64,000 bases of DNA from positions 11,552,463 to 11,616,462 of the forward strand of contig OZ037770.1 in assembly GCA_964035545.1 (NCBI GenBank), given 5' to 3'. Within the stretch, counting starts at the first letter, position 1. Each line of letters opens with the position of its first letter. Shown here piece after piece: positions 3,001-40,456 of this stretch. The notes under the pieces were generated by a model. That model saw only the letters and a list, made by a program, of their open reading frames with translations. It was not told where the DNA came from and ran no database searches. The DNA comes from Bugula neritina (taxonomy: Eukaryota; Animalia; Bryozoa). Made by a program: the position numbers and the translations under genes.

Positions 3001-3669
3001 GAGGTACATGTGTATGATCTTACTGGGAAACAGGTGACCAGCTGGTCCCATCATGATAGTAGTGGGTATGTAAACAAACTTGCTATTGTTGATGATCAGG
3101 TTGTGGTTCCTAGTAGACACAGTAAAAGACTTACAATCTACTCTCTTACTGGGGAGGTAATTAAACATGTCTCCTGCCCTCTACTCAGTAGTTACCCTGT
3201 AGCAATATGTGCAGCAGACAGACATTGTGTAGTAGTTTCTGAAAAAGCTTCCTCTCAAGTATTTAAATTAGACTTGACAACAGAGAAAGTCATCTGGACA
3301 TGCAAGGATATATCTCGACCAGAAGGTGTGACCTGCTATAGAAGTAAATATATTCTTGTGACTAACCGCAGCAGTAAAACCACCATCTGGATACTGGATG
3401 TGGAAACAGGTTAGTATTAGATTGGTTAGTTAACTACTGTTACCAATATATTAGTATTTCTCACAGTCTCACACTATAAAATATACTATGCTATGTACTA
3501 GTGATGACACACTAATACATCATTTCCTGTTACAGGTACACAACTGTCCAAAGTAGAAGATCCAACTGATAGAGCTGAGAGTACTGTGTATGATCTTCAT
3601 GTGTATAAAGACACTCTGATTGTACCTAGATGTAATGAGAAGAAAGTTCTGTTTTACAAGCTAAACTAA
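1..3669 (+). CDS. TRIM-like gene copy 1 (5' end outside window): B-box2, coiled coil, NHL-like beta-propeller
   Basis: Exons <1-161, 771-952, 1218-1388, 2271-2379, 2651-3409, 3536-3669; GT-AG introns with consistent phases; ends ...KKVLFYKLN*. Paralogous to the complete copies downstream. Confidence 0.88.
245..320 (-). mobile_element. Degenerate tRNA-derived SINE head in TRIM intron 3 (paralogous copies ~26240-26315 and ~36080-36155)
   Basis: Minus strand GCCCTCATAGTGTAATGGGTAGCGCGTTAGC... has an A-box-like TAGTGTAATGG and only a decayed B box. Confidence 0.4.
1674..2015. repeat. 22-bp minisatellite (GCTGTATAGTTATGACATCATA)n in intron 5
   Basis: About 15 units here, about 3 units at ~17305-17365 and about 7 at ~37432-37580. 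Confidence 0.9.
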
Positions 3670-4577
3670 ACAGGTGTGTGACAGGATATTATTCCATATT
3701 GTGGTACATTTATTATATTGTTTATCACACTAGACTCTGTTTGAATACATTTGGTGCTCAACTCTGTGTTTTCTACTAATGTACATATTTGTAATGATAT
3801 GTCTGAGATGTACAACTTCTACATATACACTGTGTCTGTTATTTCTAGATGATTCTCAAAGTTGACTCTGTGGACTGAGTTCTTTAACACAGAGCTATGA
3901 TACAGTGTGGAAGGCTGTATGACGTCCCAGTAACTAACTTATGCACCTTAATATGACTAATTTCAAGTAATAATTTTTTTTCCACTTGTACCAAGCCTCT
4001 TCCACACAACCTGCAAGACTTCACGGTATTAACTAGCCTGTAACTTTTTATATATCTAACATGATTTGCATTGAATGGTCATGTAGAGATCAATGTATTT
4101 ATAATGGTAACTCTAAGTCTACATTTCCTACAGCCTGAAATACTATTACATCACAATGTTTATTGTTTATTATCAAATATCAACCACTACTACTACATTA
4201 ATTTTGCTGTTGAAAAGTTGTGTATTTTGACTGATGGCCATAATACATGATTTATTACTTGATTTTTGTCCTAACAAGAATTGAATCCATATTGCTAATT
4301 AGATTGTATGTTTCAATTTGATTTTTATTTTCTTTAAATATTCTGTGAAATAAATTGCCTTTTTTTGTAGGCTATAAATATTCTTGATTGGATCTCTGAA
4401 TGCAATATCACAGAGTTATGTAATAGTTGACTGTATGGTTGTTTTACAGGAAGTTTTGAAACATTACATGCCATGACATCCTTGTTCGGAAACCGATTTA
4501 GGCAGCAAAAAGTTTGGGGTCACTGAGTGTATTTGCCAAGGACTTCTCGAGTTTGGGTATGGACCTCGAATGATATT

Positions 4578-5355
4578 CACCGGCTTTCCATGTACCGATC
4601 TCAGCGAGATCGATCCATGGAAAGATGTCAAAGATCGATCTCAGTCGTTCTGAGCTGGTCGGTCTGTAGAGCTCGAACTCAGATCGATCTCAGTGAGATC
4701 GATCCATGGAAAGACTCCAGATCGATCTGAGAAGTAGAAAAAGACTGTTCGCTAAAATGTTGTCTGCTGATAAAAATGACAACTTATTGATAATTACTAA
4801 GCAAATTACTTAATAGTTACGATAGCCACATTTTCAGATGCCAAAACTTTGACTTTCAGTACTATGATTAAAAAAACTCAATTATATAAAATTATAGTCC
4901 ATAGAAATTACAAAAAATTGGAGCATTTAAATTGAATTTAAATGACTAGTAAAACTTACTTTCATCAGTTATTTGCTGCGTAATTTCAAGCTTAACAATC
5001 CTGTAAGTTTATGAATAATCTGCAAGATAGCTATTAATTTTATTTAAGCTGTTGAGCTAAAAAATTAAAAGTGATTATCTTAAATTGGCTATATTACTTT
5101 ACACTAAAAGCTTTGTTGCGTATTGTTTACAAGCACCATTAATTTTTAGACATCAACAATCTTGTTTTTTAACCTCAGCAGCTTTAATCATCCAGATTTG
5201 TGAACAAATTATACTATTAAAGTACTCTTCACTTAAGAGGAGGCAACTCCGTGAGATCGATCTGACACTTCTCATGGAAAAACGATCGATCTGAGAGGTA
5301 TGCTCAGATCGATCTCAGCGAGATCGATCTGAGATCGGTACATGGAAAGCCGGTG
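4578..5355. mobile_element. Non-autonomous DNA transposon family A (CAC...GTG termini, 3-bp TSD; CMC/EnSpm/Chapaev-like)
   Basis: TIR CACCGGCTTTCCATGTACCGATCTCAG / CTGAGATCGGTACATGGAAAGCCGGTG; TSD ATT; empty site in the paralogous spacer at ~21615; many subterminal AGATCGATCT palindromes. Confidence 0.9.
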
Positions 5356-5570
5356 ATTGTTCACTGAACAATGAACTCAGTGACCTTGAACTTTGTGCTA
5401 CCCTTAACCATAATTTATTATTTCCAACCATAGTGAATAGTTTACTACATAGTTCAATGAACTAAAAACTAAAACATATAGTTCAATGGTTATGATGTGT
5501 ACTAGAGGTGTCCAAATCTAGGTACCAAAGCCGCAAGTGATGCCAAGCCCTTAAACCCCCCTCCCCCCCC

Positions 5571-5787
5571 TGTCGGTGAAAGGTTCTAGAAGTCCTTTGT
5601 TCTACTAGTATAAAAGGACACACATTTTAGAGCTTCAGTCACTTGCGGACTGGAGCTCACACTGGCTACTTCTCTCTACTACAATAAAGTACTGCAAGCA
5701 CACGGCAACCTCTCTCTCTTGTCTCTTCTATAGCAAGGAGTTATGTTCTCTGCCTGATTTCATTCTATAACCCACAAAACTACTACA
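5571..5787 (+). mobile_element. Probable solo or partial LTR
   Basis: TGT...ACA ends, TATAAAA at ~5608 and AATAAA at ~5683; absent from paralogous spacers. No TSD; it sits at the break of a deletion relative to the other spacers. Confidence 0.5.
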
Positions 5788-6391
5788 ATACTAATTGCAC
5801 ACAGGTTTTGTTTGGAAAGATAACTCTGAAGGAGGAACCGATACGTACATGGTGCTGCAAAGCTTATCAATAGTGTTATTACCATTGAACTATAACTATA
5901 GTTTCAGTTCAGTGTTATTACAGCATGGGTTAGTAAAGTATTCCCTAATTATCTATTATCCTGCTACTACATTATGAGATTGATTGGATTATTAACAATG
6001 TGTTAACTGACTATACACTGATAAACCCCACAAGAGCAAATTCATAACACTATTGTAAAGCATAGAAGTGAGATTGTAAAATGATGGACAAACATAAAAT
6101 GATGGGCAAACTACAATGGCCTGAAGCTATCAGCACATAATATACAGTGCACCCTCTTTATCTCACTAAGCGACAGGTGTAAAACCTCAATACACACATC
6201 AGCAACAAAACAGGGTCCAAGCTCTTCTCGTGACCTATAGAAATTCGTGAGAAAGGGGTCCTTGAGATCCACTGTATTAAATACTATCTATTGGGCACAG
6301 GTTTTGTTTGGAAAGATAACTCTGAAGGAGGAACTGATACGTTAATGATGCTGCAACGCTCATCAATAATGTTATTACTGCGTGTGTTAGT

Positions 6392-6403
6392 GGGGAATTC
6401 CCC
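6392..6403. promoter_or_regulatory. NF-kB/Rel-type palindromic site upstream of copy 2
   Basis: GGGGAATTCCCC inside a conserved CpG-richer ~270-bp module about 1.3 kb upstream of the ATG; GTAAGT donor-like sites follow at 6413 and 6541. Confidence 0.65.
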
Positions 6404-7693
6404 CAGTCCAGGGTAAGTGTTATTTTAATCCCGCATCTGCGCAGAAAGGTCTAACACTGACAGGAACTATAAGTAGTTCCATAGGTCTTCCATGACGAGG
6501 TGAAGTTTGCCCCATTAATTGTTTACCAACAGCAATAACTGTAAGTGTTAGCAAAATTTTAGTTTTAAAGTCAACTTATTGTAGTTCTACTATCTCTAGT
6601 TTCGGATAGTTATACTGTTAGTGACGCTGATACTCATAGAGTGATAGTCATAGTGATACTCTGATGGACTTTCACTTAGACTTAGAGTATCATAGTCAGA
6701 CTCATAGTCATACTGATACTCATAATCATAGTGTTTAACACAGCCTCACTCACTTGACTCATAGTGATAGTCAGTGACAGTCACACTGACACTCACTTAC
6801 AGTACCACGCTTAGTCTTGCTGTCACACTCACTGCCACAGTGTTTTGATAATGACAATCACAATGATTATGATAACATTTCTCACCATCAGCAACTGCAA
6901 GATACTTGTGATTTAGTTACTATTTGTCAGTCTCGTGATCATCTTCACCTTGAGTTTGTACTTATCATCATGAGAACGTAGATGCTGATAATCATAGTCA
7001 TAATCATAATGATGTTGAAGTTTAAATTATCAAATGATACAAATTAAAGTATTAGCAAAGCATATGTTTTGTAATTTAATAAAACTGCTCAACAGAATTT
7101 ATTAAACTTACAGGGCCTCTGCTGTAGACTGTAGAGGTGGATGTAGTAACAGAAGCATTAGAAACCACATATATTTATAACTATTTACAATACAATAATT
7201 CCAATTTCTCCACATTCTATTAAATGTCAATAAAATGCATCATTTTTTGGAATATTGAGTGAACTGCAAGGAAAACCTAATTCAAGAACCTTCATAATTT
7301 TTTTGGCTACAAGTCCCAATTCTTAGAATAATTATTAAGAAAATTCCTCTTGTTACTAATTGATTTATTATGTAATAGCTCTGGACTATTATCTGCAGGT
7401 ACTGCAGTATGCAAATGTGTATTTAAATCATGGTATTGCACTATATAGTTTATTATACAGCAAATGTTCATTATTAAAAAGATCTTTTTTAAATGTTAGA
7501 GAGTGCTTGAAATACATTATGTCTGCACTGCAGTTTTATAGCTGAGTCACATTCTACATTGTTTAAAGATATCAAGTAGTGAGTCAGAAGAGACAAACAT
7601 AAACTACTAAATTCTCTCATTACAGTGAACTACATGGAATCTGAATACATTTTATAATATGTTCTCCTGTTTTATAATATAGAGTTGAGTGAA

Positions 7694-10600
7694 ATGGCTG
7701 CAGCAGAAGAAGTTGAGTGTGGATTCTGTTTACTAAAAGAAGGTTTAGAGAATCCCAAGTGTCTACCATGTGGTCATGTACACTGTTTACTGTGTCTTAC
7801 TCGTAATGTTGATGTGAATGACATGATCAGGTGTCCCTGGTGTAGGTAGGTTAGTTTTCTATAGGCAGAGCTGAGACATATTGTTGGTAAAAAAATAGTG
7901 ATTGACATCATGTGTTTTAACTTATACTGAATTTTTACATTACGTTATATATATTTTTAATTACTACTAAATAATTTTGTGTCTTGTCACAGGGAAGTGT
8001 TTGATGAGAGAGTGGAAAGTCTTCCATCTGCTGATGTAGCAGACAACTCCGTATCATGTGACGTCTGCACTAAAAAGGGACTGAAGAAAGTGCCAGCCAT
8101 CATATACTGTACTGTGTGCCGTAAACTCTTCTGCAGAGAACATGATGAGGTGATACTTTCATTAAATATTTCTTCAGTTGATGTTCAACACTGCATACTC
8201 TAACTCAGCCTCTGATTACATGTTGTTGTACTTGAATGTTGATTTATAAGAAAGCACTGAGAGATCATGTTTCACTTTTATCTGTTTTATCTGCTGTCAT
8301 GTAAACTGCACATTTATTTCTATACTTTGTGTTAGTATGGAATTTTTATGTTCCTATAGATATTTGTAAATGTTTATATCATGTATTTGTAAGTTTCGTT
8401 TTTTTTCCACAATATGGATAGTTGAGTTATATTTCTCAGTAAAGATGTATTCTGCTATATTCAGTCACATGATGACACCAATGATGACCACCAGAAGATG
8501 ACCATCTCGGACTACAGAATACAAGCCAAGAGACTAGAGAAAAGAGTTTGTCCCAAACACACAGCATATCCCTACATACAGGGATGTAAAGTTTGTGTAC
8601 AGCTGTTCTGTGCGCAATGCACATCTTGCACTAACTTTTGTTTCGGAGGTAAGAAAGTGCTGCTGAAAATTATTTACTAAATATTGATAAATCTGATAAG
8701 TTGTATAACTACCTCAGTAACTCTTGTAAGAAAGCTGCCCTCACCATGAATTGAACTGCAGACCTCTATCATGCAACTTCTACTATATGGGCTACTGGGT
8801 AATCACAGCACTACAAATTTGAAGCTAGCATAGATAAATGGTGTATTTTGAGTAGAACCTCTGTTCAAAGTGTACTTCATTATTTATTGAGAAATTTAGA
8901 AATAGGTGAATAATTCTTAAAATACAAAATAAATTAATTGAACATTTAAAATTGAAAAAGAGGTCAGAAGTCAGTGAATTGAAGTGCCTCTCACTCGCAC
9001 AGCGTGTCCAAAGTTTTATATTTTGTTTTTCAATGGCCACGCTGGAGTTTAGTTTTTCATTGTCATTTTAATTTTAGACTCACCCCATCACATGGTTAAT
9101 CTAGATGATTTAATCAAAGAGCTTATCAATATAGATGATCTTCTCTCCACTGAAGACAAGATGTCTGCTTTCTTCAAACACCTTTCTAAAACTGTGTCAG
9201 ACTTTGATAATGAGACGGAGGAATTGCTGAATATTCTTCATACACAGCGTGATGAACAGGTTGTGTGTTTATAGATAATACTTTGTGTTACTCTGTAATC
9301 TACGTTCTGTAGTCAGGTGTTAGTAAAACATTACAATACTAATACTTAAGAGTAACAGCTAGCTAACTAGCTACTATTCTGTGTGAATTAAACCACTATT
9401 TTTTGTTCAAGAATTTAGGAATGTTATGCGAAATTATCTATGCTGTTTTTTGACATAATTCTGAAACACTTTCTCGAATAAGTTGCCGATATTCTACAAT
9501 GTGCTGATACAATGTATGATGTAGTTGACTGAAGTGAGACTGAAGTATGAGAAACTGGAGAAGGAATTCTTAGCTAGTAGAAAGAAGAATAAAGAGGAAC
9601 TGAACAGGTACATGGAGAGAGAAGTTGAAACTGTTTTGTCTCAACTGAGTAACAGTAGAATGAAGATAGAAGCTCAACTTAGACAAAACCATCAGGTGAG
9701 CACTGTTCACCATCTGTTTACTAAATATATTTAAATTATTTTGTGCGTGTGAATGTTTAATAATGCACTAGCATGCTGTGTATACGTGAAATGCAACAAA
9801 ATTTTGAAGAACTTGTGACAGACTTAGATTGACCATCACAATGCTTGATTTATATTCATTTCTGTTTTAGCTCTATAGTTGTGTGCTTACAGAATTCGAT
9901 GTCCTCCAATATAGTAATTAAAAGAATTGTTTTATAGTTGTATTCTTCTAAGTTTGTATAGTTCACAACTTTCACCAAAATCTATATGTTCCTAAGTAGT
10001 ATACTAACTATAGTTTATCTAGATGGTTGATTCACTGCCATATGTTTGCACCAAGCTTTTTGCCCATTTGTAGCTTCATTTAAACTCACACACAAGAAAA
10101 AGTAGGAAGTTGTAACTAAAAAGGCTGTCTTTTTATTCCCACTTGCCAATGCTATGGTTATGTACTGTAGGTAGATCTGGTTGAAGGATTTGCAGAGATT
10201 AAAGATAAAATACAGAGACTGGTATCTGTTGAGATACCTAAACTAGAGCTGTGTGATGTCATGTCTCTAAAGGTCAAAGGTTAGTATACTAAACTAGAGC
10301 TGTGTGATGTCATGTCTCTAAAGGTCAAAGGTTAGTATACCTAAACTAGAGCTATGTGATGTCATGTCTCTAAAGGTCAAAGGTTAGTATGCTAAACTGC
10401 AAAATACTTGCACTATTATGTTTATATAAAACCTGTTATATCTGCATTGCATGATGTAAAATTCAGTATATTATCTGAAAAGTGCCCTCCATATGTGTGA
10501 AACTACTGGTTGTTCAATTTGAATATCTGTTGGAATAGCCTTGTGTGTAGGTTTACTCAGAGTTTCTATTAATAGAATTTATACACATACTCACCTTTAT

Positions 10601-11668
10601 ATGACATAAATATTTTATATACATACTCACCTATATATAAGTATACACACATACACACATATTCACATGTATATTATAGAAGAGAAGAGAGACATAGAAG
10701 TAGACTTGGTTCCTGCAGCAGACATGATTATTAGTTTAGATCAAGGAGCGACAACTCCTACTCCTCCTAAATCTCTCAAACCCTTGCAGTCTGTTGATGT
10801 TTCTAGTTACTGTTGGTCTGTCTGTAAATATGAGAGTAACACTTATGTAGGGCATGGTGGTGGTGCAGGAATAGACAGAGTAGATGAGAGTTTCAGTGTT
10901 TTCAAGTCTTTTATTTCTCTTACCAACTCTGTAACTGGAGTCACAGTACATAGGAATAAGCTGTATGCTCTAGAGCATATCAGCAGCGCTAGTTGGAAGA
11001 TACATGTGTATGATCTTACTGGGAAACAGGTGACCAGCTGGTCCCATCATGATAGTAGTTGGAGTGTAAACAAACTTGCTATTGTTGATGATCAGGTTGT
11101 AGTTCCTGATAGAGGCAGTAAGAGGCTTACAATCTACTCTCTTACTGGGGAGGTAATTAAGCATGTCTCCTGCCCTTTACTCAGTAGTAATAGTAATACA
11201 GCAATATGTGCAGCAGACAGACATTGTGTAGTAGTTTCTGACTGGGGTTCCTCTCAAGTATTTAAAATAGACTTGACAACAGCGAAAGTAATCTGGACAA
11301 GCAAGGATGTATCTCAACCACAAGGTGTGACCTGCTGTAGAAGTAAATATATTCTTGTGACTAACTGCAGCAGTAAAACCACCATCTGGATACTGGATGT
11401 GGAGACAGGTTAGTATTAGATTGGTTAGTTAACTACTGTTACCAATATATTAGTATTTCTCACAGTCTCACACTATAAAATATACTATGCTATGTACTAG
11501 TGATGACACACTAATACATCATTTCCTGTTACAGGTACACAACTGTCCAAAGTGGACGATCCAACTGATAGAGCTAGGAGTAGTGTGTGTGATCTTCATG
11601 TGTATAAAGACACTCTGATTGTACCTAGATACAATGAGAAGAAAGTTCTGTTTTACCAGCTAAACTAA
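7694..11668 (+). CDS. TRIM-like E3 ligase copy 2 (RING-Bbox-Bbox-coiled coil-NHL-like propeller), ~605 aa, intact
   Basis: Exons 7694-7845 (MAAAEEVECGFC..LPCGHVHCLLC..CPWCR, C3HC4 RING), 7993-8149 (CDVC..YCTVC..FC..H), 8465-8648 (CPKH..CKVCVQLFC..C), 9078-9259, 9525-9695, 10171-10279, 10680-11408, 11535-11668; total 1818 nt, in frame, all GT-AG. Confidence 0.92.
10229..10387 (+). repeat. 51-bp tandem repeat of the exon-6 3' end including its splice donor
   Basis: Unit TATACTAAACTAGAGCTGTGTGATGTCATGTCTCTAAAGGTCAAAGGTTAG; donors at 10280, 10331, 10383; 1-4 units in the other copies. Confidence 0.9.
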
Positions 11669-14600
11669 ACAGGTATTTGACAGGATATTATTCCATCTTG
11701 TGGTACATTTATTATATTGTTTATCACACTAGACTCTGTTTGAATACATCTGGTGCTCAACTCTGTGTTTTCTACTAATGTACATATTTGTGATGATATG
11801 TCTGAGATGTACAACTTCTACATATACACTGTGTCTGTTATTTCTAGATGATTCTCAAAGTTGACTTTGTGGACTGAGTTCTTCAACACAAAGCCATGAT
11901 AGAGTGTGGGAGGCTGTATGACGTCCCAGTAACTAACGTATACACCTAAACCTAACTAATTTCAAGTAATAATCCATTTTCTTTTTTATCAAGCCTCTTC
12001 CACACAACCTGCAAGACTTCACGGTATTAAATAGTCTGTAACTTTTTATATATCTAACATGATTTGCATTGAATGGTCATGTAGAGATCAATGTATTTAT
12101 AATGGTTAATCTATGTCTATATTTCCTACAGACTGAAATACTATTATATCACAATGCTTATTGTTTACTATCAAATACTAACCACTACTACTGCGTTAAG
12201 TTTACTGTATGGTTTATATGCTAGTTTCAACTCACTGTATTTGTATGTCAAGTTATTATATTATATAATGTATTATATAACCCGTTTGATATTGTGTGAT
12301 CATCTCATCATTTGATTGGCTGTCATAGAATATAATAGTCAAAGTGACTAATTATTCCAGTATATTCTATAAACAGTGAATAAATTAGAGTGATAATGGT
12401 TACTAATGGCAACATATTTTGCTATAGATAACATCACCATGTCTCATTCCAGTAAAATAGTTTACAGCAATTCTACTCTGTGTAGAGTATAACATTAGCA
12501 ATGCTGTAGTTACTTGTAGATGCAGAGTTGTAGATTCTTACTTGAGTTAGAACTTGAGTTATTAGAAAAGTTGGCTTACCTTGACATCTTGCTATCAGCA
12601 AATTTATCATGTAGACTTCCTTTTATTCTTGTTCAGTAAAATGTTTATAATGGATAGAAAAAAAATTACTATTAAAATATTGGTAAAGCATGTAAATTCT
12701 TGCTCATGTTGGGTTATTGGACAAGCAAAGTGCTTTTACGTCTTGCTATTAGAAAAATTGTCATAAATTGATCATTGCTTTAACATAGGATGACTAAGAG
12801 TTATGTAATACACCACTTTTATACATGCCCAGCCAGTTTCAAGGGCATGCATGAGATGGACACGAGTCAAAGCTGATGTCAAGTATAACGTTGCTTTATT
12901 ACTTGCTTATGTTGGATTATTGGATAAGGAAGCTTAGCGCTGTTTCGTCTTTTTGATATTAGAAAAGTTATCAGGCAGATCACTGCTTCAACATCAGAAG
13001 ACTGAAAGCTATGTGGTAGACTACCCTTTAAACATGTCCAGTCAGTTTCTAGGGCACGAATGAGATGAACACAAATGAAAGCTGATCTCAAAAACGTTGC
13101 TTTATTATGGCAAAACTTCAAACTGAAATTTAAGGGAAAAATAATTTATCTCTGGGATTTCATTTCAGTGGAAATGCAGAGCTCAAAATTTAATACTAAT
13201 ATCCATGTCATGTAACAAAAAATTTAATTTCTCCCTGCAGCCAACAATAATATATTATGTTATACAATATATTCTTTTTGAAATATTTCTCATAAAAGAT
13301 CTATACACAGTATTTGATTTAATCATTAAATAATATTGCTAGACATTATTTTATAAGTTACCCGTATAAGTTACCTGCAAAAGTCACCTGCATAAGTTAC
13401 CTGTGTAAGTTCTAGCAGCTCCATTTTGCCAGCGAATTTATTTGTTATAGGCAGTGGAACTACATACATGTCTCATAAACCTGTTCAAAAGTGTTAATAG
13501 ATAAGCAATAGCTCTATATTATGTAGTCATTTTAGACTATAAGATGACAACTATAATATTGAAATGTAATCTGAGTTCAATATCATTGATTTTAAGTTAT
13601 GGGCACAGAGATTGAACAGCCTCTGACTGTGACATATGTTATGAAAGACGGACTTCATAGTATAATATGCATGGAACTAGTTTATTTGTGACAATTTGAT
13701 GCGTAAAACGCAGCTGTTCATGCTTGTATTGTTGTAAGGGTTTATTTACATAACACCCAGTGCAAATTATAGTTTTATTTGGAGCGTTATGTCGCTTGGT
13801 CACGTGGCCGTATAACCATAGAGACTTGTCATCGTGATGTGCAGCTAGAATCGTCACCCGAGCAATTATCAGTTTTAACTTCATTAATATTTGTACGAAA
13901 ACAAGAGGGGGTAACCCTGAGGACATACTTTCGACTTGCTAAACGTCATTTCCGAAAGAGGCGTTGCCCGTTCCAGGCAAAGTACTACCTTGAGTTCGAC
14001 TGCAATGTGCCGTCAGGCAGTTTTTTAGACTCAAAGCGTCTGCCTGAAGAACAGGTTTTAAGTTGACGATTCTTGGTTCTATTGTGTTGGATTGGAAACT
14101 CTTACAAAACTTGGGTTTGTTTGATTTGCTATATTTTTATTTCTATAACCATAACTGATAACTATGAGGGTGTCATTCAATTTCACAAAAGAATGCCTTG
14201 GACAGTTTGATTTTGAATACATAGAACATTTGGGAACACTCAAGGTGATAGAAGTGCCTCATTTGTTTTACAGTGTAGACTAATGTTAGATGGTTATTGT
14301 GTTGATTTTTTGTTTTATACGCTCCTTCTGGTGTCTCTACTAGTTCTTGGTGAGAAGCGGTCATCGTATACTTTTGGGTTTGTGTTTATAGTTGTTAGCT
14401 CTCTGCGAGTAGCAGACTTGGTGTTTATTTACATTTGCATTTAGCTAACCACGAGTAACAGACCTGGTTGTTATTTAGATGTTTTGGTGATCTCGTGTGA
14501 TTTAATCATATGCTATTGCCAATATCGAGTGTTGTTTTTCTTCCTGAAAATTTTCCATGAGAAGATTTAGTCGATGAGTCTTTCGTCTTTGTTTAAAAGA

Positions 14601-15876
14601 CTGAAGGCCAAGCTGAGAGCATGCCTCGGTGAAACTTCATTGTCCCTTTAATACAGTAATATACCTAACCACCCTGTGCTGTAGCATTTCTAGAGACTCC
14701 ATGTCAGAAGAGACACAAATATAAACTACTGAATTCTCTCATTACACTGAACTACATGGGATCTGAATACACTTTATAATATGTTCTCCTGTTTTATAAT
14801 ATAGAGTTGAGTGATATGGCTGCAGCAGAAGAAGTTGAGTGTGGATTCTGTTTACTAAAAGAAGGTTTAGAGAATCCCAAGTGTCTACCATGTAGTCATG
14901 TACACTGTTTACTGTGTCTTACCCGTAATGTTGATGTGAATGACATGATCAGGTGTCCCTGGTGTAGGTAAGTTAGTTTTCTATAGGCAGAGCTGAGACA
15001 TACTGTTCGTAAAAAAATAGTGATTTACATCATATGTTTTACTTTATACTGAATTTTTGCATTCCGTTATATATAGTTTCAATCATTACTAAATAATTAT
15101 GTGTCTTGTCATAGGGAAGTGTTTGATGTGAGAATGGAAAGTCTTCCATCTGCTGATGTAGTAGACAACTCCGTATCATGTGACGTCTGCACTAAGAAAG
15201 GGATAGAGAAAGTACCAGCAGTCATATACTGTACTGTGTGCCGTAAACTCTTCTGCAGAAAACATGATGAGGTGATACTTTCATTAAATATTTCTTCAGT
15301 TGATATTCAACACTGCATACACTAACTCAGCCTCTGATTACATATTGTTATACTTGAATGTTGGTTTGTCAGAAAACATTTAGAACTCATATTTTACTTT
15401 TGTTTTTTGTTTTTCAATAAATGTATATTCTGCTATATTCAGTCACATGATGACACCAATGATGACCACCAGAAGATGACCATCTCGGACTACAGAATAC
15501 AAGCCAAGAGATTGGAGAAAAGAGTTTGTCCTAAACACACTGCATACCCCTACATACAAGGATGTAAAGTCTGTGTTCAGCTGTTTTGTTTGAAGTGTGT
15601 CTCTTCAGGCAACTTGTGTGTTGGAGGTAAGAAAGTTCTGCTGAAGGTTATTTGATATTTAGTTTAGTATATCTAATAAACTATATAACCTCTTCAGTGT
15701 GGGAGAAGTGGGTGCAGTGTTGGAGAAATTGAGAATAGCCTGTGTTCTAGATTAGAAATATATCATGAGAAGTTATGCTCTAGCGAGAATTTCAACCTGC
15801 GCCCCAAACCAAAGTTTAGCAACAAAATTAAAGAGCTTAGTTTGCCTCAATTTCTCTACTACTAAATGATGTGCAA

Positions 15877-15975
15877 GCAGCTGTGGTGGTTAGAGCACTG
15901 ATATTAGTTTGAATCTCAGAAATAGTCAGTGGTTGAATTCCGAAGGTTATGATGTCAGGAATGGCTTCCCTGCAC
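15877..15975 (+). mobile_element. Degenerate tRNA-derived SINE in copy 3 intron 3
   Basis: GCAGCTGTGGTGGTTAGAGC head and TGATGTCAGGAATGGCTTCC core resemble the SINE at 56645-56824. Confidence 0.4.
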
Positions 15976-17888
15976 TTAGCCTACTTTAAACATCTATTTA
16001 ACGAGGGGTTCTCACACCCCTGAAACCTACATATTTCATTTGGAACTCTCACACTAATGGCAACTATAAAGTCATGTGAATTTTATGACCTCTTCAGTAA
16101 ATCTATGATTAGATAAAAACAGATAGACAGTAGAGTTTAAGTAGAAGTGCTATGAAACAATGTGTTTTATTATTACTTTGAGATCTATTATCTTCTCATA
16201 ACCTGTACATCTTGTCTGGAACTTGCCATTTCTATAACTCATTACATTTCTACTGTAGTCAGTGTTGCTTCAAATGTTGACTGCTTAAACAAAGAATTCA
16301 CTGACATATTAAACTTTATCCAGTGAGAAGAAATGAAAAGAACTGTTTCTATATATAATATTAGTTTGTTGTTTGTCCAGTAGTCATAGCATACCATATG
16401 GTGACATTTCAGCTTCTCACTACCTTCTTGTAGTACTGGCCTTTTAACTGTCTAACTACTGTGAGGTTATATTACTGTAGTGCTATCAGGTTAGTGAAAT
16501 GTGGGCTATTTTTCATTTACTCTCATTTCAATTTTAGACTCTAAACATGACATGGTTAATCTAGATGACTTAATCAAAGAGCTTATCAATATAGATGATC
16601 TTCTCACCACTGAAGACAAGATGTCTGTTTTCTTCAAACACCTTTCTAAAACTGTGGCAGACTTTGATAATGAGACGGAGGAATTGCTGAATATTCTTCA
16701 TACACAGCGAGATGAACAGGTTCTGTGTTTATAGAAAATACTTTGTGTTACTCTGTAATCTACATTCTGTAGTCAGGTGTTAGTAAAACATTGCAATACT
16801 AATACTTAAGAGTAACAGCTAGGTAACTAGCTACTATCTGTGTGAAGTATACCACTATTTTTTGTTTAAGGATTTAGGAGTGTTATGCGAAATTACCTAT
16901 GATGTTTTTTGATCTAATTCTGAAACACTTTCTCGAATATGTTGTCCACTTTCTACAATGTGCTGATACAATGTATGATGTAGTTGACTGAAGTGAGACT
17001 AAAGTATGAGAAACTGGAGAAAGAATTCTTAGCTAGTAGAAAGAAGACTAAAGAGGAATTGAACAGATACATGGAGAGAGAAGTTGGAACTGTTTTGTCT
17101 CAACTGAGTAACAGTAGAATGAAGATAGAAGCTCAACTTAGACAGAGTCACCAGGTGAGCAGTGTTCACCATCTGTTTATGAAATATGTATATAATCTTG
17201 TTTTCTTTCTCCCAATCTCTAATCATTTACTTTCTTCATCCAGCCTTGATCATTTACTTCTTTTACAGCGTCATGGTTTTATGCAAAAGTGTAGACAATC
17301 TGCAAGCTATGACCTCATAGCTGTATAGCTATGACATCATAGCTGTATAGTTATGACATCATGATTATACAATTTTGTCAGCCCAAGTAAAGTTATAGAG
17401 CTTAAAATTTGGCTTAAAGCAAGATCTAAATTTGTGAATGTCACAATTTCCACCTCCAAATTTCACCTTACAACTACACTTTAAAATAGAATATTATGCA
17501 TAGTTTATATTAGTATCTGTTTGTTACCACATTTGTGTTCGGTGTGCACCATATGTATTGTAATTGCGTAACATTATGTAAACATGCACAGCGCTGAGGT
17601 TTCTAATTAAGTGAAGTTATCTCCACATAACTCTGTATGCTGTTTGTTATATACTGTAGGTGGATCTGGTTGAAGGATTTGCAGAGATTAAAGACAGAAT
17701 ACAGAGACTGATATCTGTTGAAATACCTAAACTAGAGTTGTGTGATGCCATGTCTCTAAAGGTCAAAGGTTAGTATACTAAACTAGAGCTATGTGATGTC
17801 ATGTCTCTAAAGGTCAAAGGTTAGTATACTAAACTAGAGCTGTGTGATGTCATGTCTCTAAAGATCAAAGGTTAATATACTAGACATG

Positions 17889-28200: not shown

Positions 28201-30115
28201 AGACTGCGCGCTACAATGTTGTCTGCTAATAAAAATGATAACTTATTGATAATTACTAAGCAAAGCATTAAATAATTATGATAGCCACCTTTTCAGATGC
28301 CAGAACTTTGACTTTCAGTACAATGATTAAGAAAACTCAATTATATGCAGTAGAAGGTAAAAAAATGGGAGAATTTAAATTGAATTTAAATGACGAATAA
28401 AACTTAGTTTCATTAGCTATTTTCTTTGTAATTTTTAGCCTAACAATCCTGTAAGTTTATTAATAATCTGCAAGACAGCCATTAATTTTATATAAGCTAG
28501 TCAAACTAAAAAATTAAAATTAATTATTTTAAATTGGCCAAATTACCATACACTGAAAGCTTTGCTGCGTATAGTTTATAGCTGGGATTAAATTTTAGAC
28601 TAGGACCATCTTGTTTTCAACAGTAGTAGCTTTAATCACTCAAATAGGTGAACAAATTATACTTTTAAAGTATCCTTCACTTAAGAGGAGGCAACTTCGA
28701 GAGATCGATCTGACACTCTCATGGAAAAACGATCGATCTGAGGACATTTCTCAGATCGATCTCAGCGAGATCGATCTGAGATCGGTACATGGAAAGCCCG
28801 TGTAAACTAGAGCTGTGTGATATCATGTCTCTAAAGGTCAAAGGTTAGCATACTAGACTGTAGAATTCTTGTACTAGTGCACCTTTATTAAGATATTTAA
28901 AATAATCATGTATCTGCATTGCATCTGATAAGTGCTCTTCATGTGTGTGCAACTACTGGTTAGAAAATTTGAATATGATCAGTTGAAATAGCCCTGTGTG
29001 TAAGAGTCAGAGTTTCTATTAATAGAATATATATACATACTCACTTTTATATGACATACATATTTTATATACATTCTCACTTATACATAAGTATGCACAC
29101 ATACACACATATTCACATGTATATTGTAGAAGAGAAGAGAGAAATAGAAATAGACTTGGTTCCTGCAGCAGACATGATTATTAGCTTAGATCAAGGAGTG
29201 ACAACTCCTACTCTTCCTAAATCTCTCACACTCTTGCAGTCTGTTGATGTTTCTAGTTACTGTTGGTCTGTCTGTAAATATGAGAGTAACACTTATGTAG
29301 GGCTGAGTGGTAGAGCAAGGATAGACAGAATAGATGATAATTTCAGTGTATACAAATCATTCATTTCTCTTACCAATTCTGTAGCTGGAATCACAGTACA
29401 TAGGAACAAGCTGTATGCTCTACAGGGTATCACCAGCACTAATTGGACAGTACATGTGTATGATCTTACTGGGAAACAGGTGACCAGCTGGTCTCATCAT
29501 GATAATTTTGGGTATATAAACAAACTTGCTATTGTTGATGGTCAGGTTGTAGTTCCTGATAGAGGCAATAAGAGGCTTAAAATCTACTCTCTTACTGGGG
29601 AGGTAATTAAACATGTCCCCTGCCCTCTACTTATCGATGGTAATACAGCAATATGTGCAGCAAACAGACATTGTGTAGTAGTTTCTCAGTATGGTTCCTC
29701 TCAAGTATTTAAACTAGACTTGACAACAGAGAAAGTCATCTGGATATGCAAGGATGTATCTCAACCAGAAGGTGTGACCTGCTATAGAAGTAAATATATT
29801 CTTGTGACTAACCGCAGCAGTAAAACCACCATCTGGATACTGGATGTGGAGACAGGTTAGTTTTACATTGGTTAGTTAACTACTGTTACCAATATATTAG
29901 TATTTCTCAGAGTCTCACACTATAAAATATACTATGCTAAGTACTAGTGATGACACACTAATACATCATTTCCTGTTACAGGTACACAACTGTCCAAAGT
30001 AGACGATCCAACTGATAGAACTGTGAGTGGTGTGTTTGATCTTCATGTGTATAAAGACACTCTGATTGTACCTAGATGTGATGAGAAGAAAGTTCTGTTT
30101 TACCAGCTAAACTAA
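25203..30115 (+). CDS. TRIM-like E3 ligase copy 4, ~604 aa, intact
   Basis: Exons 25203-25354, 25500-25656, 25971-26154, 26764-26945, 27149-27319, 27802-27910, 29130-29855, 29982-30115; in frame, GT-AG. Confidence 0.92.
28026..28802. mobile_element. Family A DNA transposon in copy 4 intron 6
   Basis: CACCGGCTTTCCATG... / ...CATGGAAAGCCCGTG, TSD TAA, inserted within a 51-bp repeat unit. Confidence 0.9.
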
Positions 30116-33327: not shown

Positions 33328-33442
33328 CAGTCCAGGGTAAGCGTTTTTTTAATCCCGCATCTGCGCAGAAAGGTCTAACGCTAACAGGAACTATAAGTAG
33401 TTCCATAGGTCTTCCGTGATGAGGTGAAGTTTGCCCCATTAA

Positions 33443-33840: not shown

Positions 33841-35041
33841 TTAATTGTTTACCAACAGCAATAACTTTTAGTGTTAGCAAACTTGAAAGCGATGTTCATT
33901 GTTTTCAAATTTTGGTTTTAAAGTCAACTTATTGTAGTTCTATTATCTCTAGTTTCGGATAGTTATGCTGATAGTGACACTCATAGTCATACTCATAGAG
34001 TCAGAGTGATAGTCATACTGATACTCATACCCATAGTCATACTGATACTCATACTCATACTGTTTCACACAGTCTCACTCACTTGGCTCATAGTGATAGT
34101 CAGTGACAGTCACACTGACACCCACTCACAGTACCACGCATAGTCTTGCTGTCACACTCACTGCCACAGTGTTTTGATAATGACAATCACAATGATTATG
34201 ATAACATTTCTCATCAGCAACTGCAAGATACTTGTGATTTAGTTACTATTTGTCAGTCTCATGATCATCTTCATCTTGAGTTTGTACTTTACGTTCTCAT
34301 GATGATGATGCTGGTAATCATAGTCATAATCATAATGATGTTGAAGTTTAATTTATCAAATGATACAAAATAAAGTATTAGTAAAGCATATGTTTTGTAA
34401 TTTTATAAAACTGCTCAACAGAACTCATTAAACTTACAGGGCCTCTGCTGTAGACTGTAGAGGTAGATGCAGTAACAGAAGCATTAGAAACCACATATAT
34501 TTATAACCATTTACAATACAATAATTCCAATTTCTTCACATTCTATTAAATGTCAATAAAATGCATCACTTTTTGGAATATTGAGTGAATTGCGAGGAAA
34601 ACCTAATTCAAGAACCTTCATAATTTTTGTGGCTACAATTCCCAATTCTTAGAATAATTATTAAGAAAATTCCTCTTGTTACTAATTGATTTATTATGTA
34701 ATAGCTCTGAACCATTATCTGCAGGTACTGCAGTACACAAGTGTGTTTTTACATCTTGGTATTTCAATATATAGTTTATTATACAGCAAGGGTTCATTAT
34801 TGAAAAGATCGTTTTTAAGTTTTAGAGAGTGATTGAAATACATTATATCAGCTCTGCAGTTTTATAGTTGAGTTACATTCTACATTGTTTAAAGATATTA
34901 AGTAGTGAGTCAGAAGAGACACAAACATAAACTACTAAATTCTCTCATTACAGTAAACTACATGGAATCTGAATACACTTTATAATATGATATAATATAA
35001 TATAATATGTTTTCCTGTTTTATAATATAGAGTTGAGTGAA

Positions 35042-38000
35042 ATGGCTGCAGCAGAAGAAGTTGAGTGTGGATTCTGTTTACTAAAAGAAGGTTTAGAGAA
35101 TCCCAAATGTCTACCATGTGGTCATGTACACTGTTTACTGTGTCTTACTCGTAATGTTGATGTGAATGACATGATCAGGTGTCCCTGGTGTAGGTAAGTT
35201 AGTTTTGTATAGGCAGAGCTGAGACATACTGTTGGTAAGGAGTTAATGATTTACATCAGATGTTTTACCTTATACTGAATTTTTACATTACGTTATATAT
35301 ATTTTAGATTATTACTAATTAATTATGTGTCTTGTCACAGGGAAGTGTTTGATGTGAGAGTGGAGAATCTTCCATCCGCTGATGTTGCAGACAACTCCGT
35401 ATCATGTGACGTCTGCACTAAAAAGGGGCTGAAGAAAGTACCAGCCATCATATACTGTACTGTGTGCCGTAAACTCTTCTGCAGAAAACATGATGAGGTG
35501 ATACTTTCATTAAATACTTCTTCAGTTGATGTTCAACACTGCATACTCTAACTCAGCCTCTGATTACATATTGGTGTACTTGAATGTTGATTTATAAGAA
35601 AGCACTGAGAGATCATGTTTCACTTTTATCTGTTGTATCTGCTCTCATGTAAACTGCACATTTATTTTTAGACTTTGTGTTAGTGGGAATTTTTATGTTC
35701 CTATAAATATTTGTAAATGTTTATATCATGTATTTGTAAGTTTCGTTTCTTTTCCACTATATGGATAGATGAGTTATATTTCTCAGTAAATAAATATCCT
35801 GTTATATTCAGTCACATGATGACACCAATGATGACCACCAGAAGATGACCATCTCGGACTACAGAATACAAGCCAAGAGACTAGAGAAAAGAGTTTGTCC
35901 CAAACACACAGCATATCCCTACATACAAGGATGTAGAGTCTGTGTTCAGTTATTCTGTATGCAGTGCGTATCTCAGACTAACTTTTGTGTTGGAGGTAAG
36001 ATGGTCTACTGAAATTTATTTGCTAAACGCTGGGAAATTTGATAAACTATATTACTATCTCAGTAACTCTTGTAATAAAGCTGCCTCCTCTAGGAATCAA
36101 ACTTCAGTCCTCCAACTAGCAAGCTAACGCGCTACTCATTACACTATGAGGGCTACTAGGGTATCACAACACTAGAAATCTGAAGCTAGTATAGAGAGAT
36201 GGTTTACTAACTTTACTTATGGTAGAATTATCTAACTCGTTATTTTTAAATTAGAGATTCAGCAGTAGGCAAATAATTTTTAAGTTATGAAATGTAGTCA
36301 ATTGAACATTTAAAATAAAAATTAGAAATAATAAATGTAGGACAATAGTAAGGCATTTATGATGAAATATAATAATAATTATTTTATGTAGCTAGTATTA
36401 TGTCTATTAGTATAGATAAAAGCTTCCCATTTTGTCAAGTCTGCACACTTAATGCAAAAGCTGTACAAATAGTGGTTATGAGTGCTCTATTCCGTCAAAT
36501 CTGAGTGAATTTTTGTAAATTCAAATGTCACTCACTTGTACAGCCTGTCTAAGCTTTGTCACGATTTTGCCACGGTGAAGTTTAGTTTTTATTTTCATTT
36601 TAGACTCACCACACCACATGGTTAATCTAGATGATTTAATCAAAGAGCTTATCAATATAGATGATCTTCTCACCACTGAAAACAAGATGTCTGCTTTCTT
36701 CAAACACCTTTCTAAAACTGTGTCAGACTTTGATAATGAGACGGAGGGATTGCTGAATATTCTTCATACACAGCGTGATGAACAGGTTCTGTGTTTATAG
36801 AAATACTTTCTGTTACTCTGTAATCTACATTCTGTAGTCAGGTGTTAGTGAAGCATTACAATACTAATACTAATGAGTAACAGTTAGGTGACTAGCTACT
36901 ATTCTGTGTGAATTAAATCACTGTATTTTGTTTAAAAAGTTGCAACTTTTAAAATCAAATCTGAAAACTTTTTCTAATAAGTTGTCAATATTCTGCAATG
37001 TGCTGATACAATGTATGATGTAGTTGACTGAAGTGAGACTAAAGTATGAGAAACTGGAGAAGGAATTCTTAGCTAGTAGAAAGAAGACTAAAGAGGGACT
37101 GAACAGATACATGGAGAGAGAAGTTGGAACTGTTTTGTCTCAACTGAGTAACAGTAGAATGAAGATAGAAGCTCAACTTAGACAAAACCATCAGGTGAGC
37201 AGTGTTCACCATCTGTTTATAAAATATATTTAGAATATTGTTTTTATAGGTTTTTAAAAATAACTAAGCTTGCCTTTGTCATTTATTTCTGTTTCAGATT
37301 TACTTCAATATAAAAAAAAGTGAAAATAAAATAATTTACACAACTTATTGTTTTACATTTGCTGCAACTATCTTCACACCAGCCTTGATTATTCACTTCT
37401 TTTACAGCTGTAAAAGTGTTAACCACCTGCAAGCTAGGACATCATATCTGTATAGTTATAACATCAAATCCGTATAGTTATGGCATCATATCCGTATAGT
37501 TATGGCATCATATCCGTATAATTATGACATCATAGCTGTATAGTTGTGACATCATAGCTGTATAGTTATGAAATCATGATTATACAATTTTGTCAGCCCA
37601 AGTAAAGTTGTAGAGCTTAAGACTTGGCTTAAAGCAAGACTTGAATTTGTGAATGTCACAATTTCCACCTCCAAATGTCACTTTACAAACACACTTTGAA
37701 ATAAAATATTATGTATAGTTTATATTAGTATTTGTTTGTCACCACATTTGTGTGTAACATATGTATTATAATTGGTAATGTTGACATTTTTATGCATATC
37801 GTTATGTAAACATACACAGGGCTGACAACAGTTATTAAATGAAGTTATCTCCACATATCCCTGCATGCTGATGTTTGTTATATACTGTAGGTGGATCTGG
37901 TTGAAGGATTTGCAGAGATTAAAGAGAGAATACAGAGACTGATATCTGTTGAGATACCTAAACTAGAACTATGTGATGTCATGTCTCTAAAGGTCAAAGG

Positions 38001-39369
38001 TTAGTATACTAAACTAGAGCTGTGTGATGTCATGTCTCTAGAGGTTAAAGGTTAGCACACTAAGCTGGAGATTCTAGCGCACACACAGTATTATACTACT
38101 AATATTTTTAAAAGCTTCTAATAATCATGTATCTGCATTATATAATATAACGTATGAACTTTAACATTTGGCATCTTATCTGAAAATTAACCCCATGTGT
38201 GTGAAACTATTGGTTGGAAAATTTGAATATCTGTTCAGATAGCCCTGTGTGTAGGTTTACTCAGAGTTTCTATTAATAGAATTTATACACATACTCACTT
38301 TTATATGACATACATATTTTATATACATACTCACTTATATATAAGTATACACACATACACACATATTCACATGTATATTGTAGAAGAGAAGAGAGATGTA
38401 GAAATAGACTTGGTTCCTGCAGCAGACATGATTATTAGTTTAGAACAAGGAGTGACAACTCGTACTCTTCCTAAATCTCTCAAACTCATACAGTCTGTTG
38501 ATGTTTCTGATGAATGTTATTCTGTCTGTGAATATAAGGATAGCACTTATGTAGGGCTGGCATATGGTGCGGGGATAGACAGAATAGATGAGAGTTTCAG
38601 TGTTTCCAAGTCTTTTATTTCTCTTACTTCCTATGTAACTGGAGTCACAGTACATGGGAATAAGCTGTATGCTCTACAGGGTATCAGCAGCACTAATTGG
38701 GTGGTACATGTGTATGATCTTACTGGGAAACAGGTGACCAGCTGGTTTCACCATGATAGTAGTTACTGTGTAAACAAACTTGCCATTGTTGATGATCAGG
38801 TTGTGGTTCCTGATAGACACAGTAAAATACTTACAATCTACTCTCTTACTGGGGAGGTAATTAAACATGTCTCCTGCCCTCTACTCAGCGATAGTAATAC
38901 AGCAATATGTGCAGCAGACAGACATTGTGTAGTAGTTTCTGACTCTGGTTCTTCTCGAGTATTTAAATTAGATTTGACAACAAAGAAAGTCATCTGGACA
39001 TGCAAGGATGTATCTCATCCAGAAGGTGTGACCTGCTATAGAAGTAAATATATTCTTGTGACTAACTGCAGCAGTAAAACCACCATCTGGATACTGGATG
39101 TGGAGACAGGTTAGTTTTACATTGGTTAGTTAACTACTGTTACCAATATATTAGTATTTCTCACAGTTTCACACTATAAAATATACTATGCTATGTACTA
39201 ATGATGACACACTAATACATCATTTCCTGTTACAGGTACACTACTGTCCAAAGTAGAAGATCCAACTGATAGAGCTAGGAGTGGTGTGTGTGATCTCCAT
39301 GTGTATAAAGACACTCTGATTGTACCTAGATACAATGAGAAGAAAGTTCTGTTTTACCAGCTAAACTAA
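35042..39369 (+). CDS. TRIM-like E3 ligase copy 5, ~604 aa, intact
   Basis: Exons 35042-35193, 35341-35497, 35812-35995, 36604-36785, 37024-37194, 37891-37999, 38384-39109, 39236-39369; in frame, GT-AG. Confidence 0.92.
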
Positions 39370-40456
39370 ACAGGTATTTGACAGGATATTATTCCATCTT
39401 GTGGTACATTTATTATATTGTTTATCACACTAGACTCTGTTTGAATACATCTGGTGCTCAACTCTGTGTTTTCTACTAATGTACATATTTGTGATGATAT
39501 GTCTGAGATGTACAACTTCTACATATACACTGTGTCTGTTATTTCTAGATGATTCTCAAAGTTGACTTTGTGGACTGAGTTCTTCAACACAAAGCCATGA
39601 TAGAGTGTGGGAGGCTGTATGACGTCCCAGTAACTAACGTATACACCTAAACCTAACTAATTTCAAGTAATAATCCATTTTCTTTTTTATCAAGCCTCTT
39701 CCACACAACCTGCAAGACTTCACGGTATTAAATAGTCTGTAACTTTTTATATATCTAACATGATTTGCATTGAATGGTCATGTAGAGATCAATGTATTTA
39801 TAATGGTTAATCTATGTCTGCATTTCCTACAGACTGAAATACTATTATATCACAATGTTTATTGTTTACTATCAAATATCAACCACTACTACTGCATTAA
39901 TTTTGCTGTTGAAAAGTTGTGTATTTTGACTGATGGCCATAATACATGATTTATTACTTGATTTTTGTCTACACAAGAATTAACTCCATATTGCTAATTA
40001 GATTGTATGTTTGAATTTGATTCTTATTTTCTTTAAATATTCTGTGAAATAAATTGCTTTTTTTGTAGGCTATAAATATTCTTGATGGGACTTCTGAATG
40101 CAACATCACAGAGTTATGTAATAGTTGACTGTATGGTTGTTTTACAGGAAGTTTTGAAACATTACATGCCCTGGCATCTTTGTTTGGAAATCGATTTAGG
40201 CAGCAAGAAGTTTGGGGTCACTGAGTGCATTGGCCAAGGACTTTTCAAGTTTGGGTGTGCACTCTGGGAGCTGAACAATGAACTCAGTGACCTTGAAGTT
40301 TGTGCTTCACTTGACCATAATTTAATAATTCCAACCATAGTGCATAGTTTACTACATAGTTATGACCTATACTAGAGGTGTCCAAATTCAGGGACCAAAG
40401 CTACATGTGATACCTAACCTTTAAACCATGATACTATAAAAGTGTCCAATTTCAAT

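Follow-up and report, generated by a model that had tools for sequence, protein, structure and literature searches.

The locus described here raises the question of whether the members of a tandem gene array have descended as whole units or have been pieced together from one another. The window, by which we mean the entire 64,000-nucleotide stretch of Bugula neritina DNA that was analyzed (GenBank assembly GCA_964035545.1, contig OZ037770.1; C6:11552463-11616462 in the coordinates used below), carries six copies of a TRIM-like gene, arranged in tandem on the + strand at 8-10 kb each. Retrieval of the flanking DNA revealed that these are units 13 to 18 (A13-A18, hereafter copies 1 to 6) of an 18-unit array that extends over C6:11.429-11.602 Mb, and the 12 further units located upstream of the window (A01-A12) were used in the comparisons described below. 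Exon order is identical across all 18 units. From an analysis at the level of sequence, we consider it highly probable that the copies are mosaics generated by germline non-allelic homologous recombination among array members, mainly through short-tract gene conversion but with unequal crossover also taking part.

Copy 2 (A14; 7694-11668, + strand) serves as the reference gene model. This copy is intact exon by exon, with eight exons (7694-7845, 7993-8149, 8465-8648, 9078-9259, 9525-9695, 10171-10279, 10680-11408 and 11535-11668) whose summed length of 1818 nt corresponds to 605 codons plus a stop codon, and every intron has GT-AG ends.

The relationships among copies change along the length of this gene. 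For the quartet of copies 2 to 5, informative sites in introns 1 to 4 mostly support the split 2+3|4+5, whereas the stretch from intron 5 to exon 6 supports 2+4|3+5 (64 of 66 sites) and the intron 6 tail supports 2+5|3+4 (6 of 6 sites). The latter split recurs from intron 7 through the first 540 nt of the 3′ flank, and exon 7 presents a mixture of short runs. When site patterns are scored for five copies, 1+4+5 emerges in intron 3, and both 1+3 and 2+5 emerge in the 3′ region. Many of these groupings had been proposed in an earlier interpretation of the window made from its letters alone (the sequence-only reading). Its assignments for intron 3 (1+4+5), the intron 6 tail (3+4) and intron 5 (1+3+5+6 versus 2+4) are borne out, the last also by the remnant in copy 6, which agrees with copies 1, 3 and 5 but with neither copy 2 nor copy 4. 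Its division of intron 1 into 2+3 versus 4+5 agrees with the quartet sites, but intron 1 of copy 4 differs by 23-27% from that of each other copy in the window. Similarly, ‘2+3’ in intron 3 does not denote a clade, since copies 2 and 3 carry two different types of this intron that cannot be aligned with each other.

The conflict among segments far exceeds chance. A permutation test of the pairwise homoplasy index (PHI) type, which scores four-gamete incompatibility between informative sites up to 100 nt apart, yielded 0.204 compared to an expected 0.579 (z = -32). This value was reached in 0 of 5000 permutations, and noncoding sites alone yielded z = -33. Likewise, the quartet pattern switches only 52 times along the alignment, compared to 146 expected switches and a minimum of 122 among 10,000 shuffles. 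We also subjected all 15 unrooted trees of copies 1 to 5 to approximately unbiased (AU) tests in eight blocks. Each topology fails the test (AU p <= 4e-4) in three or more of these blocks, such that the 3′ block accepts only c1c3|c4|c2c5, intron 5 needs copies 2 and 4 together, and the intron 6 tail needs copies 3 and 4 together. Block-specific trees outperform the best single tree by 80.6 log-likelihood units, and the earlier assertion that no single tree fits is therefore upheld. Because paralogues on one chromosome must share one duplication tree unless they recombine, recombination is required to produce this incongruence. Two additional measures were set aside. The Hudson-Kaplan minimum of 84 recombination events for five copies was not used as a count, since it is inflated by homoplasy and by intron types that cannot be aligned, and a hidden Markov model painting that divides each unit into 21-31 segments is uncalibrated, over-splits conserved exons and serves for illustration only.

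Intron types have been reassorted as well. Intron 5 of copy 2 (9696-10170, + strand) is of a deeply diverged type, ‘type b’, that is also carried by copy 4 (27320-27801), A05, A07 and A11, and that is ~40-46% apart from the type present in copies 1, 3 and 5. The nearest relative of the copy 2 intron in the whole genome is 80% identical, and this intron is ~70% like introns of an inverted sister cluster located at 9.1-9.2 Mb. The intron 3 type of copy 3 likewise has pieces in common with this sister cluster. Some intron types are old. Moreover, the short and long types of intron 2 occur among array units in all four combinations with the presence or absence of a 900-nt intron 3 type, which is a character free of homoplasy. 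Within the same genes, synonymous divergence (dS) spans a five-fold range across exons, with the lowest value in exon 1 (0.07) and the highest in exon 3 (0.36).

The most direct traces of exchange are near-identical tracts embedded in diverged surroundings. These were located by scanning pairwise high-scoring segment pairs (HSPs) for mismatches, because megablast searches with an identity filter missed tracts whose HSPs continue into diverged flanks. Recent tracts are 220-1083 nt long, share 99.2-100% identity and have two ends, with flank identities of 58-96% and with partners that reside 2-10 units (16-98 kb) apart. The longest tract shared within the window encompasses part of intron 7, exon 8 and 3′ flank of copies 1 and 3 (3495-4577 and 20537-21619, + strand). 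This tract is 99.2% identical (1067 of 1076 nt over 3495-4570), compared to 92.3% just upstream, and its end coincides exactly with a transposon insertion of 780 nt in copy 1, past which identity is 91.7%. A second tract (11597-12118 in copy 2 and 39298-39819 in copy 5, + strand) is identical at 522 of 522 nt, with flanks of 95.7% and 74%. Both tracts are specific to their pairs, as the next best match anywhere in the genome is 93-94% identical. The near-identity of exon 8 and 3′ flank in copies 1 and 3 and in copies 2 and 5 had been recognized previously, although the first begins at 3495 rather than at 3420 and the second is perfect only over the interval given here. A third tract extends from intron 3 to exon 4 of copies 1 and 4 (495-822 and 26488-26815, + strand; 327 of 328 nt identical), with flanks of 95.3% and 88.5%.

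Equally close partners reside outside the window. The region of copy 1 that includes intron 5 and adjoining parts of exons 5 and 6 (1257-2305, + strand) is near-identical to that of A03, ~98 kb upstream, with a 381-nt stretch carrying no differences and a 320-nt stretch carrying one, separated by a 22-nt minisatellite. The exon 2 to exon 3 region of copy 3 (15142-15546, + strand) exhibits one difference from A06 over 405 nt. Two such regions are present in copy 4, in which intron 1 to intron 2 (25375-25715, + strand; 341 nt) is identical to A12, and exon 5 to intron 5 (27152-27578, + strand) has two differences from A05 and A11 over 386-427 nt. Indeed, the nearest relative of most segments of the window copies is one of the 12 upstream units and not another window copy. 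For copy 4, the nearest relative is A12 in introns 1-2 (0-1.4% divergence), copy 1 in intron 3 (2.4%), A04 and A10 in intron 4 (3%), A05 and A11 from exon 5 to intron 5 (1.1-2.3%), A01 in exon 7 (6.3%) and A12 again in the 3′ flank (3.2%). For copy 3, it is A09 in intron 1, A06 from exon 2 to exon 3, A03 in intron 3, A02 and A12 in intron 5, and copy 1 in exon 8 and its flank (0.2-0.8%). The six window copies thus appear to have exchanged sequence mostly with units other than each other.

Larger events have also occurred in the array. The two-unit segment A04-A05 (C6:11459611-11484776) matches A10-A11 (C6:11515972-11541144) over 25,185 nt at 99.66% identity, with the two segments located 56.4 kb apart upstream of the window. 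No such multi-unit, in-register duplication was found inside the window. This 25.2 kb duplication indicates that unequal crossover or segmental duplication also takes place. For the recent events, gene conversion is favored because the tracts are short, are diverged on both sides and link non-adjacent units, while the units in between are not duplicated.

These features are consistent with a process in which conversion-type copying dominates, with tracts of 0.2-1.1 kb and, in the exon that encodes most of the predicted propeller (see below), patches of ~150 nt or shorter. Conserved exons and conserved stretches of introns would supply the homology for exchange, and very different intron and spacer types would travel as cassettes. 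Copy number would change through occasional unequal crossover or segmental duplication, which probably also gave rise to the truncated units. Short patches would move propeller loop alleles between copies, and selection acting on one face of the propeller may retain new loop combinations. What the sequence shows directly is the incongruence and its significance, the sizes and pair specificity of the tracts, and the 25 kb duplication. Gene conversion is inferred from the shape of the tracts, and non-reciprocity, direction of copying, germline timing and any benefit of the loop combinations are likewise inferences.

To evaluate what such exchange might mean for the encoded protein, domain searches were conducted exon by exon. 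Exon 1 matches seven RING models with expectation (E) values of 3e-4 to 7e-3, all below Pfam cutoffs, and all eight Cys/His ligands of a C3HC4 RING can be read in its translation with canonical spacing. Exon 2 matches an ANCHR-like B-box (E 0.004) and exon 3 matches PF00643 (E 0.008), again both below cutoffs, and exons 4-6 are rich in charged, helix-favoring residues. This order of RING, B-box and helix-favoring exons is as expected for TRIM (RBCC) proteins. The Pfam scan of exon 7 returned no NHL family, its sole match being the YNCE-like PF21783 (E 0.0015), which is also below cutoff, and a precomputed Pfam domain, not NHL, is present on only 1 of 57 homologues. However, an AlphaFold model of exon 7 alone (predicted local distance difference test score of 87.6) comprises 19 strands in approximately five blades, and can be superposed on the NHL domains of TRIM3 (template modeling (TM) score 0.64, root-mean-square deviation 3.2), Thin, TRIM2 and Brat, with TM scores of 0.59-0.64. 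YVTN, YncE and WD40 propellers match this model equally well. Given this equal fit and the absence of a Pfam NHL match, we name the proteins TRIM-like with an NHL-like propeller, membership in TRIM-NHL being unproven. On the basis of sequence and modeling, the family is thus predicted to consist of TRIM-like E3-ligase genes whose products combine a RING and two B-boxes with a coiled coil and a beta-propeller of the six-bladed type, the last encoded by exons 7-8. Metagenome proteins were also considered as an independent check of junctions, but the closest of them shares 87% identity with an array copy and is hence too distant.

Variation in the predicted propeller is concentrated at a limited number of sites. 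Hypervariable codons of exon 7 form about ten patches that are spaced by ~42 codons in pairs, and the strand topology of the model suggests that these patches correspond to the loops that join strands D to A and B to C in successive blades, and would lie on one face of the propeller. The ratio of nonsynonymous to synonymous divergence (dN/dS) is 0.17-0.32 for exons 1-6, 0.61 for the exon 7 framework and 1.99 for the patches. The motif sharing that had been reported for this exon, with DWG in copies 2+3, LQGI in 1+4+5, RHS in 1+3+5, DRG in 2+4+6 and VPC in 3+4, was confirmed in each instance. From such motifs it had been proposed that recombination reassorts the loops combinatorially.

Several observations agree with this proposal. 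Incompatibility within exon 7 depends on distance, as the PHI statistic at 50 nt was matched by 8 of 5000 permutations for five copies (p = 0.002) and by 0 of 1000 for 13 independent copies. Among 105 pairs of units, seven share runs that are unusually long at p < 0.01 compared to one expected, and the long shared runs include 141 nt in A05/A06 and 214 nt in A04/A06. When alleles one base apart are pooled, neighboring loop alleles (2-5 nt different) at loops 42-123 nt apart occur in all four combinations, as exemplified by SWS or SY- joined to NSN or SLT in copy 2, A08, copy 5/A12 and A03. Furthermore, pairs of units that share a loop allele have diverged by 4.96% in the framework within 45 nt on either side, compared to 6.66% otherwise (permutation p = 0.005), and this effect is gone beyond 150 nt (6.31 versus 6.26%).

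Other observations weigh against loop reassortment. A strict four-gamete test restricted to exactly identical loop alleles revealed no violation, and loops P199 and P224 exhibit no flank effect, such that some of the motif sharing is probably due to recurrent substitution. Within exon 7 the six window copies taken alone give a modest signal, none of their pairs remains significant after correction for multiple tests, and the dN/dS value of 1.99 is biased upward because patch codons were picked for their variability. The evidence for combinatorial reassortment of loops is thus weaker than that for mosaicism elsewhere in the gene, but the distance dependence, the allele combinations and the flank effect stand.

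The best-surviving alternative builds on these same weaknesses, and proposes that the sharing of exon 7 motifs arose by convergent or recurrent substitution under positive selection, with recombination signals confined to introns and flanks. In keeping with this explanation, exon 7 is nearly star-like for five copies, with 13 of 15 trees retained, incompatibility remains at 0.46 within 50 nt, and the patch dN/dS is ~2. We nevertheless consider convergence unlikely as a full account, given that incompatibility depends on distance, that even alleles 3-5 nucleotides different occur in all four combinations, that divergence of the flanks drops locally among copies sharing an allele, and that long runs are shared by A05/A06 and A04/A06. 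We interpret exon 7 as a region in which the loops are probably reassorted by short conversion patches (150 nt or less), with recurrent substitution under positive selection also contributing.

Repeated unequal reciprocal crossovers could likewise create hybrid units, with no gene conversion taking place. The 25.2 kb two-unit duplication, the variable lengths of units, the truncated units A08 and copy 6, and the presence of two alternating spacer types are all compatible with such a history. In addition, a single haplotype cannot show non-reciprocity, which defines gene conversion, two close crossovers would leave such a tract as well, and the junctions are those of the assembled sequence. However, identity established by a single crossover would continue through the following units, whereas the tracts observed here extend for 0.2-1.1 kb and are diverged on both sides. 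Their partners are 2-10 units apart with no duplication of the units in between, and very many double crossovers would be needed to generate the exon 7 patches, which measure 150 nt or less. It is therefore improbable that crossover alone produced these mosaics.

A more speculative proposal is that the array, including its broken units, serves as a donor library for directed conversion of propeller-loop patches, driven by hotspots or even occurring somatically. If so, conserved framework between the loops or a minisatellite derived from exon 6 might act as initiation sites, and bryozoans would possess a counterpart of templated receptor diversification. The minisatellite in question has a 51-nt repeat that comprises the last ~46 nt of exon 6 plus the splice donor, and resides in intron 6 at 10234-10398, 17727-17882, 27872-28025 and 37958-38070 (+ strand). 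There are 0-8 extra repeats per unit, each of which constitutes a decoy donor site because the repeat carries the exon 6 donor. The history of intron 5/exon 6 gives way to that of the intron 6 tail within this minisatellite, although the notion that the repeat promotes exchange is speculation. We regard the donor-library proposal as very doubtful.

Chimeric joins of paralogues or haplotype switches during assembly could in principle mimic mosaic genes, particularly as this is a tandem array region and the assembly is not fully phased according to its paper (PMC11480708). The assembly, tzBugNeri2.1, is a hifiasm primary assembly of 216.00 Mb in 320 scaffolds plus the mitochondrial genome, with a quality value (QV) of 53.7, and was built from 2.82 million PacBio HiFi reads with a mean length of ~9.7 kb at 132x coverage (run ERR12085103; PMC11480708), and an alternate haplotype is deposited as GCA_964035465.1. 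Since window copies share no identical stretch longer than 1.1 kb, reads of this length would span the junctions and nearly whole units. The 206 kb array contains no Ns, and mosaicism is evident at all levels of divergence from 0 to 15% as well as in intron length types, which mis-joins would not generate. Moreover, a haplotype switch exchanges alleles and not sub-kilobase segments of paralogues. On this indirect argument, an artefact of assembly is hardly credible as the source of the mosaics. Part of the window interval 200-6000 is present in 22 of 24 listed sequencing runs from eight studies, the best of which holds a fraction of 0.49 of the sampled words.

Finally, programmed or somatic diversification templated from the array, as would be suggested by analogy with immunoglobulin conversion in chickens, might draw on the recent tracts or loop alleles that the broken units A08, A02 and A07 share with intact genes and on the minisatellite at one recurrent switch point, but it is scarcely to be entertained when everything observed is fixed in a germline-type consensus assembly and tract ages span 0-15% divergence, as expected of evolutionary events.

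The other window copies depart from the reference model in various ways, all being on the + strand. Copy 1 (A13; 1-3669) has its 5′ part cut by the window start, with exons 1 and 2 just upstream, and each remaining exon is intact (exon 3 ends at 161, followed by 771-952, 1218-1388, 2271-2379, 2651-3409 and 3536-3669). In copy 3 (A15; 14816-20711) all exons are open, intron 2 is of the short type and the upstream region is of its own type, but the intron 7 donor is CT (20452-20453) where the other five copies have GT, and this copy is probably splice-defective as a result. Each exon is intact in copy 4 (A16; 25203-30115), which has a transposon fragment in intron 6 (28026-28802), and in copy 5 (A17; 35042-39369). 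Copy 6 (A18; 44905-49136) is a fragment at the array edge that lacks exons 1-5 and retains exon 6 (44905-45013), exon 7 (47237-47935) and exon 8 (49003-49136). Its intron 7 is ~1.07 kb long compared to 124 nt, and its intron 6 bears an insertion with broken reverse-transcriptase open reading frames (ORFs) of a non-LTR-type element (45149-46355, - strand; LTR, long terminal repeat). Outside the window, four units are defective: a 2.4 kb insertion interrupts exon 7 in A02, A07 has a 10-nt frameshift in exon 7, A08 consists of exons 7-8 only, and A09 has a stop codon in exon 1. All four still have recent tracts or loop alleles in common with other units.

Repeats contribute further to differences among units. 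A 22-nt minisatellite in intron 5, present in copy 1 (1677-2013, 15.5 repeats) and copy 5 (37438-37577, 6.4 repeats), explains much of the length difference among introns of that type. A transposon-like element of ~780 nt with inverted ends of ~39 nt occurs at 4577-5358, 40456-41148, 28026-28802 and, on the - strand, 19412-18749. The elements behind copies 1 and 5 are 99.1% identical but are located ~190 nt apart relative to the gene, indicating separate recent insertions, and copies 3 and 4 have older fragments in their intron 6. A dispersed repeat of ~160 nt (15704-15863) with more than 1600 candidate matches is located within intron 3 of copy 3. Among the 40 matches that were scored, those 83-86% identical lie on nine chromosome-scale sequences, and the repeat may be SINE- or MITE-like (short interspersed or miniature inverted-repeat transposable element). 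The upstream type of copy 3 (14520-14815) differs by 36-41% from those of copies 1, 2, 4 and 5 (e.g. 7400-7693, 24910-25202 and 34750-35041) and is common to A03, A07, A09 and A12. Together with a second-type spacer downstream of copy 2, this distinct region indicates that at least two spacer types alternate in the array.

Directly 3′ of the array is an LTR retrotransposon (50869-55221) whose direct repeats of 197 nt (50869-51065 and 55025-55221) are 99.5% identical. Its uninterrupted ORF (51299-54916) encodes 1205 amino acids, in which zinc-knuckle, protease, reverse-transcriptase and integrase motifs can be recognized by eye. Farther beyond the array, an ORF of 185 amino acids (59176-59733) may correspond to the N-terminus of a dynein heavy chain.

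Exchange of this kind has precedents in other recognition-type families. In the NLR-B30.2 and finTRIM genes of zebrafish, domain-specific gene conversion has been inferred, and conversion tracts shorter than an exon were proposed to combine substitutions and thereby add variation (Howe et al., 2016, Open Biol 6:160009, PMC4852459). Those genes also form a large tandem family of intracellular recognition-type proteins in which conversion differs by gene part and loops of the C-terminal recognition domain are under positive selection (PMC4852459). However, the recognition domain described here is a predicted beta-propeller rather than B30.2/SPRY, the bryozoan host is without adaptive immunity, and our evidence includes intron cassettes and two-ended tracts that could be dated, whereas the zebrafish inference drew on dS comparisons between groups. 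Primate TRIM clusters such as TRIM5/22/6/34 and the chromosome 11 ‘reservoir’ are similar in having tandem paralogues and C-terminal positive selection (PMC3228819; PMC2151084). There, gene conversion was recognized as a source of tree incongruence, but the recombination-detection method GARD returned one breakpoint and the process was deemed ‘not extensive’ (PMC3228819). In contrast, every tree is rejected for the bryozoan copies, there are many breakpoints per 5 kb unit, and the C-terminal fold is different.

The TRIM-NHL proteins TRIM2, TRIM3, Brat and Thin share the order of RING, B-box, coiled coil and C-terminal propeller that is predicted for the bryozoan proteins, but classical TRIM-NHL genes are single-copy and conserved, whereas the bryozoan family forms arrays with hypervariable loops. 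Plant NLR clusters, MHC and KIR are mosaic tandem arrays in which patches shuffle solvent-exposed variable residues and unequal crossover brings gains and losses. Those protein families are unrelated to the bryozoan TRIM-like family, in which exchange might likewise generate functional diversity. In chicken immunoglobulin genes, short patches templated by pseudogenes reassort loops through a somatic, AID-dependent process. The likeness lies in the copying of short patches from an array that includes nonfunctional copies, with reassortment of variable loops, but nothing in the bryozoan array indicates a somatic or programmed process.

The process itself is textbook for immune-type arrays, but the family in which it operates is fast-evolving and undescribed. 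No publication on bryozoan TRIM arrays was retrieved in our literature searches, and the present case appears to be the first description of such shuffling in a bryozoan TRIM-propeller family. One practical consequence is that gene trees, duplication dating and dN/dS estimates for these TRIM-like genes are unsafe unless conducted segment by segment. The dated tracts also provide measures of the size (0.2-1.1 kb) and reach (up to ~100 kb) of exchange. With germline recombination as the probable cause, the array represents a well-resolved case in which a recognition-type family would keep its enzymatic half constant while its binding face is reshuffled.

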